Shown: positions 2,898 through 22,434, numbered from the stretch's first letter. The stretch is 22,836 nucleotides of DNA from Vitrella brassicaformis CCMP3155 (GCA_001179505.1 CDMY01000767.1:1-22836), one strand, 5' to 3'. Numbers and translations are program-made. The notes: a model not told the origin generated them from the sequence alone.

Positions 2898-3765
2898 AAT
2901 TGCGATGGACAGACTGTTCAACTGGTGCGTAGACTAAAAAGGTTGAGACAGCCAGTTGCACTCCAACTGATGAAGTTGTGCGTGGAGCTGTCTCATATCG
3001 AAGTCCTGAGTTCGTCCTGCACGATGCCGCCGATACACAGAGTTCGAGACCCCGGCGAAATGTGGGCCGGGGCGACAGCTCTAGTCCTTTTTCATCTAAG
3101 GTCGGATGAATGAAACATCTCTCCGGTGCGGCAGAAACCCGCCAAATTTGCGTAGTCTTGGTGGATTGTAAGGTCGGCTGGAGTGTGTGGCTGCTTTTCT
3201 GGTTTTCCTGCCGTACCCCCGTGCCCTTGAGCCGTCCAGCTATGAAGCGCTGTTGCTGCTCACAGATGCCACAGAGAGCTCTACGCCATTGTTGGCGGTG
3301 CAGCTGCCAAGGGATCCGTAGGAGCTTATTTACTCTGACAGCGACTTGGATCACGTGAATGTGAAGTGTATGTGCATGTAAGCGGAAGCTGTGTCTTGTA
3401 GGGCCTTGCTGCATCCTTCCGCATCGGTCTTTTCGGAAAAAGACAGATTCTGCACAGTTTTTAACACACGGATATCGTCGGGAGGCGAACCGGAGCAGGG
3501 ATTTTCCTTGCTGAGCTTTGCTGAGGATATCTTGCTGAGGATACGGATGTCTCGGTTCTTGTCTCGGGTCCCTTCCTGGGAGGATTCCGTCGATGGGAAT
3601 AGACGCCTCGCAGAAGGCAAGGATCGCTTTGGTAGGGGGAACGTTTTCGAGCTGCCTGCCTGGTCTGATGTTGCAATGAGCGATCTGCTGGAGAATGCAC
3701 GGTTGGCGGCCTTGTAGTTCACGGCTGGCAACGATTTTGTTCGTGTCGCAACTGACGCCGCCTGG
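2898..3765 (+). repeat. Repeat family A, tandem copy 2 (possibly an assembly duplicate of copy 1)
   Basis: ORF translations at 1958/3110, 2239/3391 and 2309/3461 are identical. Flanked by N gaps on both sides. Confidence 0.85.
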
Positions 3766-4065: not shown

Positions 4066-6075
4066 ATTCGAGTCCACGTTGAATTGCCATGGACAGACTG
4101 TTCAACTGGTGCGTAGACTAGAAAGGTTGAGACAGCCAGTTGCACTCCAACTGATGAAGTTGTGCGTGGAGCTGTCTCATATCGAAGTCCTGAGTTCGTC
4201 CTGCACGATGCCGCCGATACACAGAAGCACGATGCCGCCGATACACAGAATTCGAGACCCCGGCGAAATGTGGGCCGGGGCGACAGCTCTCGTCCTTTTT
4301 CATCTAAGGTCGGATGAATGAAATATCTCACCGGTGCGGCAGAAACCCGCCAAATTTGCGTAGTCTTGGTGGATTATAAGGTCGGCTGGAGTGTGTGGCT
4401 GCTTTTCTGGTTTTCCTGCCGTACCCCCGTGCCCTTGAGCCGTCCAGGTATGAAGCGCTGTTGCTGCTCACAGATGCCACAGAGAGCTCTACGCCATTGT
4501 TGGCGGTGCAGCTGCCAAGGGATCCGTAGGAGCTTATTTACTCTGACAGCGACTTGGATCACGTGAATGTGAAGTGTATGTGCATGTAAGCGGAAGCTGT
4601 GTCTTGTAGGGCCTTGCTGCATCCTTCCACATCGGTCTCTTCGGAAAAAGACAGATTCTGCACAGTTTTTAACACACGGATATCGTCGGGAGGCGAACCG
4701 GAGCAGGCATTTCCCTTGCTGAGCCTTGCTGAGGATACCTTTCTGAGGATACGGATGTCTCGGTTCTTGTCTCGGGTCTCTTCCTGGCAGGATTCCGTCG
4801 ATGGGAATAGACGCCTCGCAGAAGGCAAGGATCGCTTTGGTAGGGGGGACGTTTTCGAGCTGCCTGCCTGGTCTGATGTTGCAATGAGCGATCTGCTGGA
4901 GAATGCACGGTTGGCGGCCTTGTACAGTCCGGACCGCGTAAGTGGGTCAGTACATAGCTGGCTCACTTACGTGTCTGACCCGCTTATACGTACTACAGGG
5001 CTGACCCAGTTGTTTTCCAGCGACTTTTAGAGTGATTTCTCGCTGTGAATGAATCACAGGAGCCTCTCAGAACACCATTGACTCTTTTTTTCGCGCTCAA
5101 AGTCACTCAAAACGACGAAAAACCGGTCTGTTCTGTCATTCATTCAATCAGTCCTTGAATGGCTGCGAGAGCCCTTGGATGTCTCCGAATGTTTGATTCA
5201 TCGTTGATCTCCACCCCCGCCACGCAAAGTGATGCAGCCTGAGTGATTTTGCAAGGAAATTCGTCGTCAACACGTTCTCTTGGCGTCATCAACGGTGTCT
5301 GATGGGCCATGACGGCACGAAAGGCATGAACAGCAAGCATAACAGGAAGCAAATCACATAAATCATGCCGCCCCGCCGCCTGCAGCAGTGAATGCATCAG
5401 TCGAAATGGCCATCAAATCGCTCTCACGATGAGTGGGTGGGCGGATGGGGTGGGTGGAGGGCGGAGGGCGAAGTGATGCATCATGCATGGAATGACTGAG
5501 GAGGAACATGCTGCATGCTGACCACCCTCTTGTTTGTCACAAATGGGTCTATCGTGCCTCGGAGTGAAACAGCCGCTCTTCCGTTTACATCGTGAGTCAA
5601 CCCCGCCAAGCAAACTCCATCTTTCGTCGCGATCACCGTCCGAATGGTTCATCTCAGAATATGACAATCAAAATGTCTGTATTTCTCCGTTCATTCACGT
5701 TTTCATCGGTCCGCTCTTTCACAAAGGTGTTCTTCATCGTCTTGCGGTCATTTTGAGCCATGAATGGTCGGTTTGGATGGCTGATTTGAGTCTCTTTGGA
5801 AGGTGACCCGGTTATCCGGTCCGTTTTTGACTGTGTACAGAGTGATTCAGCCCAGCTGGCCCACATACGCAACTGACCCGCTTATACGGTGACCCACTTA
5901 CGCGGTCCGGACCGTAGTTCACGGCTGGCCGCGATTTTGTTCGTGTCGCAACTGACGCTGCCTGGATTTCATTTCTCGGCCGATGTCTGTTCATTCATGG
6001 ATGTTCTTATCAATCCACGTGCCGTACACTCGCCGACGCATCCATTGACCCTTTCCTCATGTACAGTCCGGCTGT
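4066..6075 (+). repeat. Repeat family A, diverged tandem copy 3, split by a DNA-transposon insertion at 4925-5914
   Basis: 4066-4924 aligns to copy 1 with substitutions and a 24-bp tandem duplication (4203-4250). Family sequence resumes at 5915 (tagttcacggctggccgcgattttgttcgtgtcgcaactgacg). 5990-6075 matches 15385-15480 in reverse complement. Confidence 0.85.
4925..5914. mobile_element. Non-autonomous Tc1/mariner-type DNA transposon (990 bp, 25-bp TIRs, TA target-site duplication)
   Basis: Left TIR cagtccggaccgcgtaagtgggtca (4925-4949); right TIR tgacccacttacgcggtccggaccg (5890-5914); 1 mismatch. TA lies on both sides (4923-4924 and 5915-5916). The empty site ttgTAgttc is seen in copies 1 and 2. 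No transposase motif recognised inside. Confidence 0.9.
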
Positions 6076-12089: not shown

Positions 12090-12500
12090 ATGAACATTCG
12101 AGACCCCGAAGGAGGGCCGGAGAAGGCACACGACAGCTTCAGTCCTTTTTCACCGGTGCGACAGAAAACCGCCAATTTGCGTAGTCTTGGCGGATACGTT
12201 GTTGACTCTCACCGGTCGACGTCGGCTGGTGTGTGTCTCTGCTCTTCTGGCTTTCTGACGTCCCCCGGTGCTCATGAGCCGTCCAGGTATGAAACTTTGT
12301 TGCTGCTCACAGATGCCACAAAAGCGCCGGGCCATACAAAAGCGCCGGGCCATTGTTGGCGGTGCAGCTGCCAAGGGATCCGTAGGAGCTTGTTTACTGT
12401 GACAGCGAGTCGGATCAATGACGTGTGAATGCGAAGTGTATGTGCACAAAAGCGAAAGCTGTCTTTGCCGCGTCCTCTGCTCGGAAAAAAAAGATTGCAC
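12090..12500 (+). repeat. Repeat family A, diverged partial copy
   Basis: cgagacccc, aaccgccaatttgcgtagtcttgg and gagccgtccaggtatgaa...cagctgccaagggatccgtaggagctt align to ~1890-2300. Carries an 18-bp tandem duplication at 12318-12353. Confidence 0.85.
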
Positions 12501-15379: not shown

Positions 15380-17203
15380 AGACCGCCGCCAGACTGTACG
15401 CAATTAGGATGGGGTCAATAGATGGATGCTCGCCGAGTTAATGGCACGTGGATTGGTAAGAACATCCATATCTGAACAGACAGCGCTCGAGACATGACGT
15501 GCAGGCGGCATCAGTTTAGCAAAAATTGCGGATCAGTCATGAATGACAAGGCCGCCAACCGTGCATTCTCCAGCAGATCGCTTACTGCAGCAGCAGACCA
15601 GGCAGGCAGCCTGAAAGCGCTCTCTAGGGCGATCGTTGCAGCCCTTTCCCAATATTGCCGTCAGCCAGGCGTCTCTTCTCCCCATGGGCGTATACGTAGC
15701 ACTTACAACAGCCCCGGCGGCATCCCCCCAGCGAGAGACCCGAGGCATCCGTATCAGCGGCAAGGCTCAGGCAAGGAAGACCGGATCCGTAGGGTCCGCC
15801 CCCCAGGCAGCATTTGGCACACGGGCCTCATTCCGACGTCAAGGCCCCAGCCTAGCTTCGGACATTCGACACGCAAAGGGAAGCTACAGTCAACAAATAA
15901 ATGCTCCAACCTAAAAGTTCAAACGCGGAAACAAGCGCGGAAGACAAATGCACTTGACGCCCAACACATCGCGTGGCTTAGGAGACATGTGTGGCTTAGC
16001 GTCCGTACAACATTCCACACCGCTCTCTTCGTTTCTATCATGCATATACCTCTACTTCCCCTCTGTTCACTGCCGAAGTCGGCTCATGTGAAAGGCGATG
16101 GATGCAGCGTTTTCTGCACCTCCCGTAAACGGATGCGGTCAGCGCAGGTTGCGTAAGAGTGCTCGCAGCCCGGCCAAGCGTACTACTCGTTCATCGTTGA
16201 TCCACTTGAGGCGCTCAACGAGGTACTTGTGAGCTGTGTGCTCTCGTGTCGTAGCTGCTAACGCCCCTTTTCTTGAAGGGAAGCAAGTCTGGGCTCACAT
16301 GATATATACTGTGACCCTTGGGTATTTATACTTTACTAATCGCCGAATGTTCCGATGTAGGGCCATTGTAGGCAAAGACGCCTAGGTCGGTCGGCATACC
16401 TAAGCAGAGTACCTCTATCTTCCGCTTACAAAGCCCAATCATCGCTCACAAGCCGTGTCTCAGACGTCTCTTCAGTCAGATTGACAAAGGAGCCCGTTCT
16501 TCTTACTCAAGTCCAGCCACTCCATCCAGCCTGCCACAGAAAGGCACACGACATGCAGCACATACACGAATGAATTCGAGGACAGCGAGACGCCGGGATT
16601 TTCGCTGCATATGTATGTCTTATAGGTATGCCCACAAGCAGAAGATGCAACCGTCTCCGCTGCATCTGCCAGAGGGAAGTCATCCTAGATGTGCCACTGT
16701 GGATGGGCTAGTTTAGCATGCAGAAACCTGTGCAACACACTTTGAAGGCGGAGGGACTGTCCAACCATGCACAAACGGTGGCGTCACCTGTCGCGCCAGT
16801 TTGTCATTCTCGTACCTTGTGCAGAATCTGTCTTTTTCCGAACAGACCGATACAGATGGATGCAGCAAGGTCCTACAAGACACAACTTTCGCTTTTGTGC
16901 ACATACACTTCACTTCACATAATCCAAGTCGCTGTCAGAGTAAATAAGGTCCTACGGATCCCTTGGCAGCTGGAACACCATCTGTGAGCAGCAACAGCGC
17001 TTTATACCTGGACGGCTCAACAGCACGGACAGAAAACCAGAAAAGCACGACACACACCAGCCGACTTACTAATCCGCCAAGACTACGCAAATTTGAAGAG
17101 TTTCTGTCACCGGTGAGATGTTTCATTCATCCGACTTCACATGAAAAAGGACTACAGCTGTCGTGTGCATCCCCCGGCCTACCTACCGCCGGGGTTTCGA
17201 ATG
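15380..17203 (-). repeat. Repeat family A, diverged inverted copy with ~1 kb of unrelated sequence in the middle (~15780-16815)
   Basis: 15545-15660 is the reverse complement of ~2500-2570 (aaggccgccaaccgtgcattctccagcagatcgc). 15735-15775 matches ~2385-2430. 16820-17203 is the reverse complement of ~1890-2310. Confidence 0.75.
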
Positions 17204-17385
17204 TGCACGTTTCCACCATGGGAGGCAAGTTCACGCTCCATTGCACGTTTCCACCATGGCCAAAAGGGCGATTTCATTGCATCTTTCAGTATTTTAGGCA
17301 CATCACCGTACGCATGAGCAGCAGAGACAGCAGTGAGTTCATCTTCATGATCATTGCGCTCGCTGGACATATGTACCTCATCAAC

Positions 17386-17551
17386 CTACACACATACAGG
17401 CATGCAACACACATAGACACAACACAGCAGAGAGGTGAAACGCGTGAGTGAGTATTGGTACGTACGTATGCGTCACACACGAAATGAATTCACACACACA
17501 TACAAACACGTAGCCCAGCTGTCTGTCTATCCCTTTCCCCTTCTGACTGAC
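17386..17551 (-). other. Putative spliceosomal intron (166 bp, phase 0) in the Copia integrase-RT linker
   Basis: Donor gtcagt at 17551 after codon CTG; TG/pyrimidine-rich end ...tgtatgtgtgtag at 17386. Splicing gives KYMNGL|VDEVHMSSERNDHEDEL...VPKILKDAMKSP in frame; unspliced, the ORF stops and the downstream part is in another frame. Confidence 0.75.
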
Positions 17552-18117
17552 CAGGCCATTCATGTACTTCTGCATGAGCGTCTGGTACTCCTCAGTGGTC
17601 CACACACACTTGACGGTCTCGGTCCCAGGCAGCGATGGTATCCGCCAGCGAATGAAGTCCTCCAATGTCACGCGCGTGACCATCTCGGGGTCGAGAGTGG
17701 CCGTCTGGAGTGAGCCGACGTGGTAGTCCTTGTAGCGGTCCTCAGGGAAGTGAACGTGTCGGCCTGCTCGTGTCGTCGTGCCCTGTGGCTGAGCTGCCTG
17801 CTCAGCTGGGGGCTGAGCTGCAGGTGCCGGTGGGTCAGCTGCCATTGCTGGTGCCGCTGCAAGGGGCTCGTTTGCATGCTGGTGCCGGCATGGGCTCGTC
17901 ATGCTGTGGTGATTGCTGGTGCCGGCATGGGCTCGTCATGCTGTGGTGGTGGTGGTGGTGGTACTGCTGCTGCTGCCGCCTCGTCGTCCAGGTGGTCCGC
18001 ACCGTCATGCTGCTGGTCTGCAATGCCGCCATTGCCTTGGTCCTGCTGTCCGTTATGCTGTGGTGGATCGGCCGCCTCAGCTGCGGCTGGCTGCTCGTGT
18101 TGGTCTGCACCTTCCTG

Positions 18118-19330
18118 CTAATGTTGCTGAGGTTGCTCCCCTTCTGAGCCGTCGTTCTCGGACACAGCCGCAGTGGGCAGAGGGGCTGCTGGTGCTGGTG
18201 GCTGTGGTGCTGGTGCTGGCGGCTGTGGTGGGGGCACTCCTTGCTGGATGAGTGGCGGTGCAGTAGGATGCGGGTGAGCGAAGTAGCCGTGTGGTGGGTA
18301 GGGGGCTGGTCTTGGTTGTGGCGGTGTCGGCACCGCAGGAGTGGCAGGGAAGGGCGTTGCGGGTGTGGTCGTCTTGCTCGCCGTCTTGAGAGGGAACACC
18401 GACTCGTGAACCGACACATCACGTGACTCAACTACCACCGAACGATCTGGGATGAACACACAGTGCACGTCCTTTGTGTTCTCCTTTCTGCCCAGGTACA
18501 CCCCTTTCTCAGCCTTGAAATCAAATGGATGACGGCGAGGACCCTCAGGTGCCTTGCGCTGGTGGACGTAGGCCAGCGCACCAAACGCATGGATGTCTTT
18601 GTAGTCGGGCTTGACACCACGCAGGGCCTCGATGGGGGTCATCAGACGCTCACGAGACAAGGCAGCATGCGGCATACGGTTCCTCAGGTAGGTCGCCCAC
18701 TTGACGGCGTACGGCCACAGCAAGTCGCGAAACGTCCACAGTCCGCTCTGGTGCAGCAGCTTTCTCGACATGTCCACGATGATGCCTATGGAGCGCTCGA
18801 CGATGCCATTCTGGTGCTGATGGTGGGCGGCGCTGAACTCCTGCTTGATGTTGAGGTCGGCGCACGTTGAGCAGAACAGACGAGAGTGGAACTCGCCTCC
18901 GTTGTCGGTGCGAAGACGGTGGATGCCGTGGCCGTCCGTATTCGGTGCGGAAGAGCTTGAGTGCGCGCGCGACGGTGTCGGCGGTGTGGTCGGACAGCAC
19001 ATAGACGAATGCGGCACGAGGGAAGACGCAGACGAAGAGCATGAAGCAGGTGAACCTCGAGATCAAGTTGCCGATGATGCTGGTCTTGACGGGCTTGATG
19101 TCTGCAGTGACGAGGTCGCCGATGAAGTCGGCCTTGATGGGCTCTCCCTCCTTGGGCACTTCGCGCATCGCGCCGAGTTTGCAGCTGTCGCATGGGGGCA
19201 GGTCGTTGGGCACCTTGACGTTCTCGTTCTCGGGCCATTCGCTCATGCGTGAGAGGGCCTTGGCAGTCGCATGGCTCTTGTTGTGCCAGTAGTTGTAGTT
19301 CTGCTCGGACGAGTCGACGGCCAACACACA
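18118..19330 (-). pseudogene. Copia GAG-pre-integrase plus DDE integrase, frameshifted
   Basis: ORF 18650..19552 carries the HHCC zinc domain and the first Asp; ORF 18118..19017 carries TDNGGEF and VERS. Removing a 4-bp duplication (ccgtccgt, 18932-18939) gives TEYGHGIHRLRTDNGGEF in frame. A premature TAG lies at 18118-18120. Confidence 0.92.
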
Positions 19331-19560
19331 CTGATCAACCCTGACAGCAACAGACTCACACACACTGGTTAGCCCTGGGGCATCACCCGTGTTTGTGTGT
19401 CTGTCTATCGCCACCTGCCCGTCATTCTGACCTGAATGTGGGCCGGGGCGAGCACATGGTGCTGCTTTGAAGGGGGCCCCGGACCCCATGCTATGTTGTT
19501 CGGGGCTCAATCGTCCACCACCATTCTCCATCCGTCCCGTGTGCATGGCCATGTCCCCAC
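19331..19560 (-). other. Putative spliceosomal intron (230 bp, phase 0) in Copia pol between protease and pre-integrase
   Basis: Donor gtgggg at 19560 directly after codon CAC; ggctaac branch-like motif ~40 nt before the acceptor gatcag at 19331. Splicing gives KLHFIDFVH|CVLAVDSSEQNYNYWH; read-through hits a TGA. Confidence 0.6.
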
Positions 19561-19587
19561 GTGCACAAAATCGATGAAGTGCAGCTT

Positions 19588-19979
19588 CTGATGAGGCTGT
19601 AGTTGGTTGTCTTGTGCTTTGCTTAGACCATACGGTGGGTATGGTCTAGATCAATACAGGTCGACTCAAGCGTGGGGACTCGAGAGCGATTGAATGAATG
19701 AACGTCAGTCGTGAAAGTCCTCTGCGCAGTGCCGGTCATGCAGCGAGCTCAACCAATGGGCGCTGTGAGCGTTGACAAGGCAGGAAACTGCCGCTGCCAA
19801 ACTCGCAGACGACCGGCAAAAGCAAACACCACGTCTGAGGACATCGCATGCACAGCCAGGCAGACACACAGACAGTGTGGTGTGTGTGGTTGGTGTGTCT
19901 GTCTGCCTGTCCTTCTGTCTGTCTTGATACGCACCAGAGAGTGATTTCAAAAGTGCACCCGAACGAAAAGCGACACGAC
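19588..19979. mobile_element. 392-bp insertion in Copia pol flanked by a 10-bp target-site duplication
   Basis: agtgcagctt occurs at 19578-19587 and 19980-19989. Removing the insert plus one copy (402 bp) restores RCGKLH-FIDFVH in frame. Confidence 0.8.
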
Positions 19980-20439
19980 AGTGCAGCTTGCCGCACCTCG
20001 AGAGGGGAATGCTCACACCGGTGCTCTCGTGGATGAAGTGCGAGGCGACTTGGTGGCTCAGGTAGACACCGTATCCATGCAGGTTGATGTCGTCAGTCGC
20101 AAACACGTTGTACTTGAGGTCGAGCACGACAGCGATGTTGCCGATCGTTAGAGTGACGGGGCCAGATGTGCTCTGCATGGTGAGGGGGAGGGTGCCGACG
20201 GCCTTGATGGGCATGAGATCGTTGGATGCTGTCCTGATTATTTCGGGCACGGCTAGGGGCGAGATGTTGACCAGGTGTTTGCCGTCCCTCACGGCGCTAT
20301 TGGTGGCGGCGCAGTCGACGAGCATGCTGCTCTGCAGGTCGATGGAGTAGAGCTCAGATACGATGGGCTGAACGGTGATGACGCGCTGAGTGATGAGGCA
20401 CCACGAGTCACGGTCGATGTGGTGCTGCTCCACAGTCAC
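19980..20439 (-). pseudogene. Copia aspartic protease region of pol
   Basis: MLVDCAATNSAVRD...GTLPLTMQSTSGPVTLTIGNIAVVLDLKYNVFATDDINLHGYGVYL...PLSRCGKLH follows the Copia protease layout (DSGAT..H, G.G.V.L, NVLYVP.L..NL.SV). Confidence 0.8.
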
Positions 20440-20473
20440 TGGCTGTGCCGTCCCTCCGTTGCCGCGGTTGCCC

Positions 20474-21573
20474 CTATCGTTGCGTTGTCATCTGGCGGCC
20501 GTTGCGTGCGCTGCGGTTGTTGATGTCCCTGTCTTTTCTCGGCTCCCACATCAGCGCCCTGCTGTCGCCGTTGCGCAGCTTGTTGATGCGGTCGTCGCAG
20601 TAACGCCATCCACCCCAATGCGTCTTGTGGCAGAAATCGCAGTCCACCATGCCGATGCGCCTCATCCGCTGCTCGTCCAGATGCCCGTGAGGCAGGGGCT
20701 GGTGGTGCTGTGAGAGGATGTGTGGGTAGGAAGTGTAGGAGGGATGGAGCTGATGGTGCATGGGCATGTGCTGGGGTGGGCTGCTCTACATATGTGGTGC
20801 CATGAGAGGCATGGGTGGCTGCACGGGATAGCTGCCCTGTGGCGGGAAGAGTGGAGGGGCGGGCGGTTGGGTGTTCTGCATCATGGCCATGATGTCTTGC
20901 TGTGGGCTCGTCGATGTGGTCGACTGGCGGAGGTGGGTGGCTCCCCACTTGCGCAGGCGGTCCTTGATGGCGTCCAGCCCCAAGTTGTCGCTGAGTATGT
21001 TCTCCTTCAGGATACTAAGGCTCGTCTCGGTGGTGGGGATGGAATCAGTCAGGTAGGCCTGCTGATCCAGCTGTGAGAGCTCCTTGCCCATGCACACACG
21101 ATACTGATTCACCAGGCTCTCGAAGCGCAGGATCTCCGTCTCCGGCTCGAGGGTCTGCCAGGCGAATGAGCGGAGCTGCTGAGCCAGCATCGTGCCCATC
21201 TGGTTCTTGTTGCGCAGGTAGCACTTGCGAAGATGCCACCACGCGTAGGCGCCATTGCCCTCCTCCATGTCGCCCATCTGCTGCAGGTAACTGGCCGCTC
21301 TTCCTTTGCAGACGCCCACGAGGATACGCCACAGTCCCTGTGCGGCCTTCCATTTGTTCTTCGTCGCCTCAGTCGCATCAGTTGCTGTCGCATTCGCTTG
21401 GCAGCCTCCTCAGCATCCCCTCATTGCTCGGGCATCACTCCTTGCTCAGCATAGGAAAAGAGCAGCCGCCTGACCTTCCAGTTCCAGTTCAGATACGCGT
21501 GAGAGTCGCCATTTAGCTCGGGAATCGTGAGACGCTGGTCGTCGATGGTGATCTCAAAGCCTCGGCCGGCCAT
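20474..21573 (-). pseudogene. gag: Copia gag, disrupted
   Basis: Stop and frameshift near 21420; in-frame TAG at 20786-20788 followed by same-frame continuation (20767-20474) containing the zinc knuckle; frameshift before the protease near 20490. Confidence 0.85.
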
Positions 21574-22434
21574 AGCCTCAGTGCAGAATCAATAAAGGAA
21601 AGTCTATACAAGCAGAAGTAGCCTTGCTTCAGCAGAGAAACCTTCTTGCTGCGCCCATGTTGAAGTTGCTGTGTGCCGAACACATACCGTGGTCAGAAGG
21701 ATCAATCTCTGCCGTACAAGCCTTCACACAAGGCACGCAACGCACGAGTCCATCATGGGCGTGGCCAGCCCGCCAAGCAACACACGCACGAGAGCTGCCA
21801 ACGCTCACCAAAGAAGCACGAAATAGTGAGACAGAGAGAGAGCGGTTTCACGGAATGTCCTAAGCGGCTTGACGGCCAAGTCCCATGTCTTTCACGCACA
21901 ATCAAACGAACGAGAGGCAACAGGAATCACCCACGCACGCTCCACATGCACAGAGGAACCCAAGGAACACACTCACGAGGCCTCCAGACCGAAACCCACG
22001 GCCGTCCGCTGAATACGATCTGGCCGAGTCGCTCCTGAGATGTGCCACCCCGGGCCTCCCCCACGCCGCAGAGCCGTCCGCCCTCGGCGCCGGAACCTCC
22101 ATCCGCTATATACGGGTCAGTTGCAGGATGGAAACCCCTCGACTCCGCTCGAAAGACGACTCCGTTCGGGTGCGCGTCGTCGGCGGATCCCTGCCGCGCC
22201 TCGACTCGAGGACGAACAGGAAGAAGTGACATCGTCACTTCATCGCCAAGTAGCGTGGATCCTTCAGCGTCAATAGTGAGACAGGTCTGCAAGCTAAGCG
22301 TGCACAACCCTGCTGGGGGCGCGCGCGTGCGCGACGTTGTGTGCCTGCCTTGATGTTCGCAGCGCATTGCATATCCTCCTGTTTGCATGTGTGCATCGTC
22401 CGAATGAATCCCTTGTGTGTTCATGAGGACGCTC

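Follow-up and report, generated by a model that had tools for sequence, protein, structure and literature searches.

A probable host-type intron between integrase and reverse transcriptase in a Ty1/copia retrotransposon family of Vitrella brassicaformis

LTR retrotransposons copy themselves via RNA, and an efficiently spliced intron should vanish from them after one cycle. Intron retention is rare in these elements because RNA-mediated copying normally erases introns. To our knowledge, the natural exceptions are few and comprise Ogre together with the introns by which copia, BARE and EVADE produce gag. Penelope-like elements reportedly retain introns in genomic copies (Arkhipova and colleagues), but they belong to another class (GIY-YIG, target-primed), and another reason has been proposed for the retention. 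In Ogre, a Ty3/gypsy element of plants (Tat/Ogre), a short intron between PROT and RT divides the polyprotein gene into two ORFs; splicing is needed to reach RT, unspliced RNA must persist as the template, and partial splicing has been shown experimentally. Among Ty1/copia elements, alternative splicing in copia (Drosophila), BARE and EVADE/Arabidopsis gives a gag-only subgenomic mRNA, the unspliced RNA encoding Gag-Pol (PMC5580714). About 172 bp lie between the two ORFs of the plant Ty1/copia element Bianca, for which an unusual mode of expression is suspected (PMC6317226). As summarized in a later source, an intron that Boeke et al. 1985 placed in Ty was lost on transposition (PMC12786077).

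Here we describe a Ty1/copia family whose integrase and reverse transcriptase are probably separated by a spliceosomal intron. The host, V. brassicaformis, is a chromerid, an alveolate alga that is a close relative of apicomplexan parasites. The window, that is, the whole stretch of DNA analysed (22,836 nucleotides of strain CCMP3155, GCA_001179505.1 CDMY01000767.1:1-22836), contains a decayed, 3ʹ-truncated LTR retrotransposon copy of this family. Its parts were ordered from a three-frame map and Pfam scans of the minus strand; C42, C739, C962 and L045 denote other sequences of the family and X1 and X3 public sequencing runs, all treated below.

21658..21833, minus strand: 5ʹ LTR, 176 bp, TG...CA, a 95% match to the stretch after the C42 pol stop codon and to two C739 stretches
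21645..21657, minus strand: primer-binding-site-like stretch TGGGCGCAGCAAG directly after the LTR; identical letters follow the LTR in L045 (4597-4609)
20477..21588, minus strand: gag region with an in-frame stop at 20786-20788; weak Retrotran_gag_2 match; homologous to the open L045 gag frame
19980..20487, minus strand: protease region (Pol_BBD, PF22936), out of frame with gag owing to the loss of 5 bases near 20485
19578..19979, no strand assigned: insertion of a dispersed non-autonomous repeat, 402 bp, private to the window copy, with a 10-bp target duplication
18118..19577, minus strand: integrase (zinc-finger, rve core, SH3-like domain; Pfam rve and SH3_retrovirus), with frame breaks near 19552 and 18932
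17552..18117, minus strand: low-complexity linker and end of the upstream exon, ending ...QKYMNGL; its last 300 nt are indel-free in the alignment of all copies
17386..17551, minus strand: probable intron, GTCAGT...TGTGTAG, 166 nt, phase 0; exact joint in runs X1 and X3
17222..17385, minus strand: start of the downstream exon (RT N-terminal lead-in VDEVHMSSER...ELAS), 95% identical to residues 1-55 of the C42/L045 RT/RNase H frame
17203..17221, minus strand: truncation point, where family homology ends; what remains of RT/RNase H and also the 3ʹ LTR are absent from the contig; loose ends at 17202/17203/17220
16880..17202, no strand assigned: unrelated dispersed repeat adjoining the truncated element; at least 34 genome places, with matches ending at 17202-17203

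The closest analogue of this arrangement is the Ogre intron, and the Vitrella element works like Ogre without being a member of that group. Both have an LTR retrotransposon polyprotein gene that a short intron splits into two ORFs, so that splicing would be needed to reach RT and unspliced RNA would have to persist as template. However, the Vitrella element is of the Ty1/copia type, with an RVT_2 reverse transcriptase, and resides in an alveolate alga; its intron lies after INT, so that ORF2 contains only RT-RNase H; and partial splicing, established by experiment in Ogre, is presumed here. With copia, BARE and EVADE the family would share a spliceosomal intron in a Ty1/copia element and spliced RNA occurring alongside unspliced RNA, the latter being the genome. 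The logic is nevertheless opposite: splicing there creates a stop and yields Gag alone, whereas splicing in Vitrella would remove stops and extend the frame into RT, and shGAG splicing of the copia/EVADE type was rejected on this ground. Bianca, too, is of the Ty1/copia type and has two ORFs with a similarly long spacer between them, but its first ORF encodes GAG or GAG-PROT and its second all remaining domains, and it is not known to be spliced. Nor is Bianca near enough kin of the Vitrella family to surface in the protein search, as all hits outside the family are at most 41% identical. Finally, the Ty1 experiment predicts precisely intron-less copies derived from spliced RNA, which is what the joined form found in run X3 would be; the artificial intron was lost efficiently, whereas the natural Vitrella intron persisted through repeated transposition.

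The family has the Ty1/copia domain order, with Pol_BBD, rve and SH3_retrovirus in ORF1 and RVT_2 in ORF2 (Pfam). In the window the 176-bp LTR precedes gag, and in C42, C739 and L045 it follows pol; homology of the window to C962 and L045 ends at 21831-21834. The stretch that follows the LTR, at 21645-21657, presumably resembles primer-binding sites of the half-tRNA(iMet) type. Decay of the window copy, claimed in the preliminary description, is plain from the gag stop, the indels near 20485, 19552 and 18932, the 402-bp insertion and the truncation. Gag and protease form one frame in other copies, and the integrase region is unbroken there. The 10-mer of the target duplication lies at 19578-19587 and again at 19980-19989, and a joint omitting the 402-bp insertion occurs in all four public runs, with 10 letters fitting both sides. 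The repeat family to which the insertion belongs is about 390 bp long and has at least 35 genome matches at 77-96% identity; its depth relative to the Copia family is 10x in DNA-like runs and 66-160x in RNA-like runs, and it may be highly transcribed.

Two further readings were considered and set aside. A second phase-0 intron at 19331-19560 is unsupported and unnecessary, since C962 and L045 read from protease to integrase in one frame; the window's frame change there consists of a 4-base loss near 19552 plus the 402-bp insertion, and a contig of the RNA-like run X1 crosses 19331, the supposed acceptor, unspliced. A non-catalytic integrase, suspected from a Cys in the 'FVDD' motif, was ruled out, the catalytic D,D35E being intact in the family. 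At the other end of the copy, an 18-nt direct duplication, CCATGGTGGAAACGTGCA (window 17222-17279), lies exactly where the RT frame breaks off and suggests a microhomology-type rearrangement at the truncation. The repeat at 16880-17203 recurs in the window at 1891-2242, 3043-3394, 4250-4602 and 12150-12462, partly in a tandem-like array with N gaps at about 1.7-4.6 kb.

The intron candidate itself is a 166-nt GT...AG segment running on the minus strand from 17551 to 17386, between the upstream frame and the RT frame. The last codon of the upstream ORF (...QKYMNGL) is a CTG for Leu at 17554-17552, and GTCAGT begins at 17551. The frame VDEVHMSSER...VPKILKDAMKSPFWPWWKRAMERELAS starts at 17385, one base out of step with the upstream frame, which in the unspliced window copy meets a stop just beyond the AG. 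The coordinates, end motifs, differing frames, phase-0 join and TG-rich makeup given in the preliminary description are all correct when read on the minus strand, T and G together making up 0.61 of the segment. At family level, ORF1 (gag-protease-integrase-linker) has about 1220 codons and terminates within the segment, and ORF2 (RT-RNase H) has 545 codons, starts exactly at the AG and has an ATG of its own five codons past it in all copies. The poorly conserved linker preceding the segment (17900-18120 and its counterparts in C42, C962 and L045) is a low-complexity stretch rich in Pro, Gln, His and Ala, with short indels between copies and with frame changes in the window copy and C42.

When the junction region was searched against the genome at DNA level, three places came up, namely the window, C42 and C962, and all three carry the segment, so that no intron-less copy is present in the assembly; nor does the segment occur anywhere in the 72.7-Mb genome outside these three family copies. 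Every copy found has it at the same codon boundary, with the donor GTCAGT or GTCGGT and the acceptor TGTGTAG. The suggestion that the intron was gained after insertion and is private to the window copy is thereby refuted. Outside the LTR, the window and C962 have different flanks, homology stopping at the LTR end, and the two are therefore separate insertions. Domestication of a single copy, another scenario raised earlier, is not supported, given that the copies possess LTRs and occupy different loci. C962 has integrase and linker in a single ORF terminating inside the segment, and the donor is kept; a scaffold gap begins inside the intron. In C42, the 545-codon RT-RNase H frame starts exactly at the AG and runs to a stop, after which the LTR follows.

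Copies from other sources agree. An independent NCBI assembly contains a 5.9-kb contig (L045; GCA_029979645.1, JARPOD010003058.1) that holds the whole element with uninterrupted frames, in the order gag-protease-integrase-linker, the segment of 187 nt with a stop 11 codons in, the 545-codon frame for RT-RNase H and finally the LTR. Two near-identical 1977-nt contigs (L044/L046) of JGI sample 3300017297, possibly an MMETSP transcriptome re-assembly, represent a C962-type copy with the complete segment. L045 carries exactly the same 99 nt at both ends (1-99 and 5806-5904), and its unit includes one LTR, as in a cyclic de Bruijn path; because its ends overlap in this way, the contig may be a composite of several copies, and the cyclic path could stem from LTRs that were collapsed, from a tandem array or from a circle with 1 LTR. 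C962 (L038) holds part of the integrase twice (reverse complement 4600-5400) and has N runs at 793-1092 and 2522-2821; the duplication and gap point to a tangled assembly graph and are consistent with more copies than were assembled. C739 shows the order RT-LTR-gap-RT-LTR, its junction region not being assembled.

Four complete alleles of the segment are available, of 166, 197, 197 and 187 nt, which correspond to 1, 2, 2 and 1 modulo 3. All four start with GTC(A/G)GT, end with TGTGTAG and hold in-frame stops, which lie 11 to 57 codons in. Removal from GT to AG nevertheless produces the phase-0 join of ...KYMNGL to VDEVH... in every allele, notwithstanding the lengths. Because the lengths differ modulo 3 and in-frame stops are found throughout, no fixed frameshift or read-through would serve, and only exact excision joins the frames. 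A programmed frameshift or stop read-through was accordingly rejected, the frame offset varying (1 or 2 modulo 3), several stops being present and no structured signal being found: the segment has no stable fold (fold z = +1.9), and it has no Rfam family match near threshold.

The segment also evolves as an intron would. Its interior shows 5.7-9.6% divergence from allele to allele, and one to three indel events in each pair, against 1.1-3.7% in the flanking exon (460 nt), where indels are at most codon-sized. The interior thus changes 1.6-5.5 times faster than the exon flanks (Fisher p < 0.01 in five of six pairs), while the first approximately 20 nt and the last approximately 45 nt are nearly invariant. 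Maintenance of the GT and AG ends while the interior diverges, proposed earlier as a check, therefore holds across the four complete alleles.

Selection on the element was assessed as pairwise Nei-Gojobori dN/dS between intron-bearing copies. For RT-RNase H, the ratio is 0.11-0.13 when L045 is compared with C42, C962, C739 and the JGI contigs (Fisher p 1e-9 to 2e-18), 0.40 for C42 against C962, and 0.19 for C42 against C739, a copy whose junction is unassembled. The protease-integrase-linker region gives 0.31-0.52 (p < 1e-6 for the long comparisons) and gag 0.35-0.45. Synonymous distances (dS 0.05-0.18) resolve three sublineages among the copies with an available junction region, consisting of the window copy, of C42 with C962 and the JGI contigs, and of L045; the intron is present in all three, and C739 is a further RT lineage. 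Copies that merely decay after one burst are expected to have dN/dS near 1. The low ratios, including those of the ORF downstream of the intron, therefore indicate that the intron-bearing lineage transposed repeatedly with its RT in use. To judge from these sequences, the intron has been kept through several rounds of copying via RNA. Of the scenarios offered in the preliminary description, the one supported is that of a lineage that copies unspliced RNA and is able to use spliced RNA, with at least three sublineages under purifying selection sharing the intron.

Relatives of the family are organized differently. The next relatives in the Vitrella genome are only 34-47% identical in RT, and three Vitrella Copia relatives have rve, SH3 and RVT_2 (Pfam) in one uninterrupted ORF of 1103-1319 aa. 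Since relatives encode integrase and RT in one ORF, the intron is a derived trait of this family. Within a library of 1.84 billion representative proteins, only two proteins belong to the family; thousands of other Copia matches typically place RT at residues 800-1200 of one long protein. Protein searches with the RT exon, with the linker end and against this library looked for the product of the junction, one linker search being swamped by low-complexity words. No protein running from the linker into RT was found, a blank that the length windows and short contigs make uninformative; only P0001, P0062, P0063 and P0073 are family proteins, and all are called from internal ATGs.

A form that precisely lacks the GT...AG segment exists. 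Contigs (as opposed to raw reads) of four public runs, X1, X2, X3 and X7, were aligned to 16900-21500 at 90% likeness or more, and a joint that skips exactly 166 nt, from 17385 to 17552 (CT..AC on the plus strand, and hence GT..AG on the minus strand), was found in two of them, which come from two different studies: in one contig of X1 at depth 5.5 and in one contig of X3 at depth 187. In X2 the site is without coverage. Each of the joint contigs is short, with a shorter anchor of 27 nt; only three letters fit both sides of the joint, and a repeat-induced false join is therefore unlikely.

What this form represents depends on the nature of the runs. X1 and X2 comprise 25-28 Mb of contigs, the longest of 7.6-9.3 kb, and their ratio of repeat depth to element depth exceeds that of X3 and X7 by a factor of 6-16; from the contig total, the longest contig and this ratio of the 402-bp repeat to the element, they are taken to be transcriptomes. 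X3 and X7 comprise approximately 100 Mb of contigs, the longest of 104 kb and 35 kb, respectively. These two are presumably genomic DNA, because approximately 100 Mb matches the 72.7-Mb genome together with the 25.65 Mb of bacterial scaffolds that Woo et al. removed from the Vitrella assembly (PMC4501334). The depths in X3 fall in near-integer steps (84-108 for window-specific contigs, 187 for the joined form, 274 for the intron bin, and 474-517 for exon 2 and integrase), which fits about three intron-bearing and about two intron-less DNA copies. The joined form in X3 would accordingly consist of intron-less genomic copies; such copies are absent from the assembly, which is fragmented at exactly these family sites. 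In X1, presumed to be RNA, the intron bin has a depth of about 5.0 next to 5.5 for the joint, and the JGI contigs, the sole long contigs from another source, keep the intron. As the joined form is also found in the DNA-like X3, the joined words of X1 could be transcripts of intron-less copies, and the joined form may derive in part from intron-less DNA copies. The joint from 17552 to 17385, proposed earlier as a check on RNA-seq reads, thus exists as an exact joint in contigs of both X1 and X3, and in X1, presumably RNA, it may come from splicing.

In structure the segment resembles host introns. Four Vitrella actin introns, delimited by means of the conserved protein, have lengths of 166, 208, 116 and 95 nt and the donors GTAAGC, GTGAGT, GTACGT and GTCAGT; their 5ʹ halves are rich in purines and their 3ʹ ends, ahead of the AG, in TG. 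In the Copia segment the donor is that of the fourth actin intron, the build is shared, and the length falls within the actin range. The earlier reservation about its length, which was based on nearby host introns of 47-79 bp, falls because actin introns span 95-208 nt. The genome as a whole is compact and poor in TEs, which account for 1.5 Mb, Copia contributing 213 kb (PMC4501334). It is also intron-rich: introns occur in 94.75% of genes, the median being six per gene, and total 16.4 Mb (PMC4501334).

Taken as a whole, the segment is probably a genuine U2-type GT-AG spliceosomal intron resident in a V. brassicaformis Ty1/copia family. The earlier claim of a host-style spliceosomal intron between integrase and RT of a Copia element, which must be removed for RT to be joined to the polyprotein, agrees with every test run. 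A quite different reading treats the segment as the inter-ORF spacer of a two-gene element, in which RT-RNase H would be made from unspliced RNA by termination-reinitiation or internal initiation, the GT...AG would be incidental and the joined form would be an ancestral intron-less subfamily. The conserved ATG of ORF2, 13 nt after the ORF1 stop, lends itself to this account, as do the joined form in a DNA-like run, the retention of the segment in the JGI contigs and the precedent of Bianca, with its two ORFs and no mechanism shown (PMC6317226). We consider it improbable nonetheless. The joined and unjoined forms differ precisely at GT and AG in phase 0, which this account leaves unexplained; the segment has the donor, size and composition of a host intron; the distance and frame from the ORF1 stop to the ORF2 ATG vary by allele, with stops 11 to 57 codons in; the segment contains no structured RNA signal that we could find; and the five codons between AG and ATG are conserved in frame with ORF2.

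The remaining alternatives concern the segment's origin and its reality. It may have arisen as a DNA-level insertion (an introner, a MITE-like element or filler DNA) into an intron-less element that was later co-opted, which would make it a recent gain and would be compatible with intron function today. Gain must have happened sometime, as relatives at 34-47% identity are without a break here; intron-less family members probably exist; and GGT is present at both junctions. However, a 3-nt repeat is expected for any G|GT...AG|GT intron, there is no target-site duplication or terminal inverted repeat at the segment such as the private, TSD-flanked insertion considered earlier would leave, and the 72.7 Mb contain no further copy of it. 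Since the segment is common to at least three sublineages, whose dS reaches 0.18, it is not recent on the family's time scale, and such an origin is unlikely; an introner or MITE origin in particular was rejected, given a segment found nowhere else, with no inverted termini and with only GGT shared by its junctions. That the segment is a product of decay or mis-assembly, with random indels in a dead copy and a GT and AG by chance, is scarcely credible. The window copy is heavily decayed (stops, indels, the 402-bp insertion, truncation) and the N gaps of C962 begin inside the segment, but the same segment recurs in two assemblies independent of each other and in a third data set, the frames on its two sides are open over 848+ and 545 codons, dN/dS lies well below 1, and the exact joint occurs in contigs built from reads.

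If the segment is a spliceosomal intron, the element's expression could proceed as follows. The host spliceosome would excise the intron from some of the transcripts and so yield mRNA encoding the complete Gag-Pol polyprotein, and intron-retaining RNA would encode Gag-PR-INT only; partial splicing would thereby set the ratio of RT to Gag-PR-INT. Unspliced RNA would be the form that is reverse-transcribed, so that new copies inherit the intron, and reverse transcription of spliced RNA would generate intron-less copies, as X3 hints. The strongest version of this scheme holds that host splicing is obligatory for the lineage, with RT obtained from spliced RNA only, intron-retaining RNA alone being propagated, retention setting the ratio of Gag-PR-INT to RT-RNase H, and the family mixing intron-bearing with precisely intron-less copies. 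We put this version forward tentatively, as a possibility that falls somewhat short of being likely.

In the literature searched, which is incomplete, no Ty1/copia element was found for which an intron between integrase and RT is reported; as far as that search shows, the position is new for a host-type intron. In other retroelements, frameshifting sets the ratio of products. If splicing in the Vitrella family is partial and regulatory, it would be a third way to dose Pol products, beside frameshifting and subgenomic gag RNAs. It would also make one ask how unspliced RNA in Vitrella avoids being retained in the nucleus. The finding bears on gene annotation, as the published Vitrella pipeline flagged TE genes partly by low intron number (PMC4501334) and this Copia element probably bears an intron. 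Should the intron-less genomic copies be confirmed, the family would offer a natural read-out of how frequently spliced and unspliced RNA are reverse-transcribed, and a family that mixes intron-bearing and intron-less members would, if true, be a natural counterpart of the classic Ty1 intron experiment.
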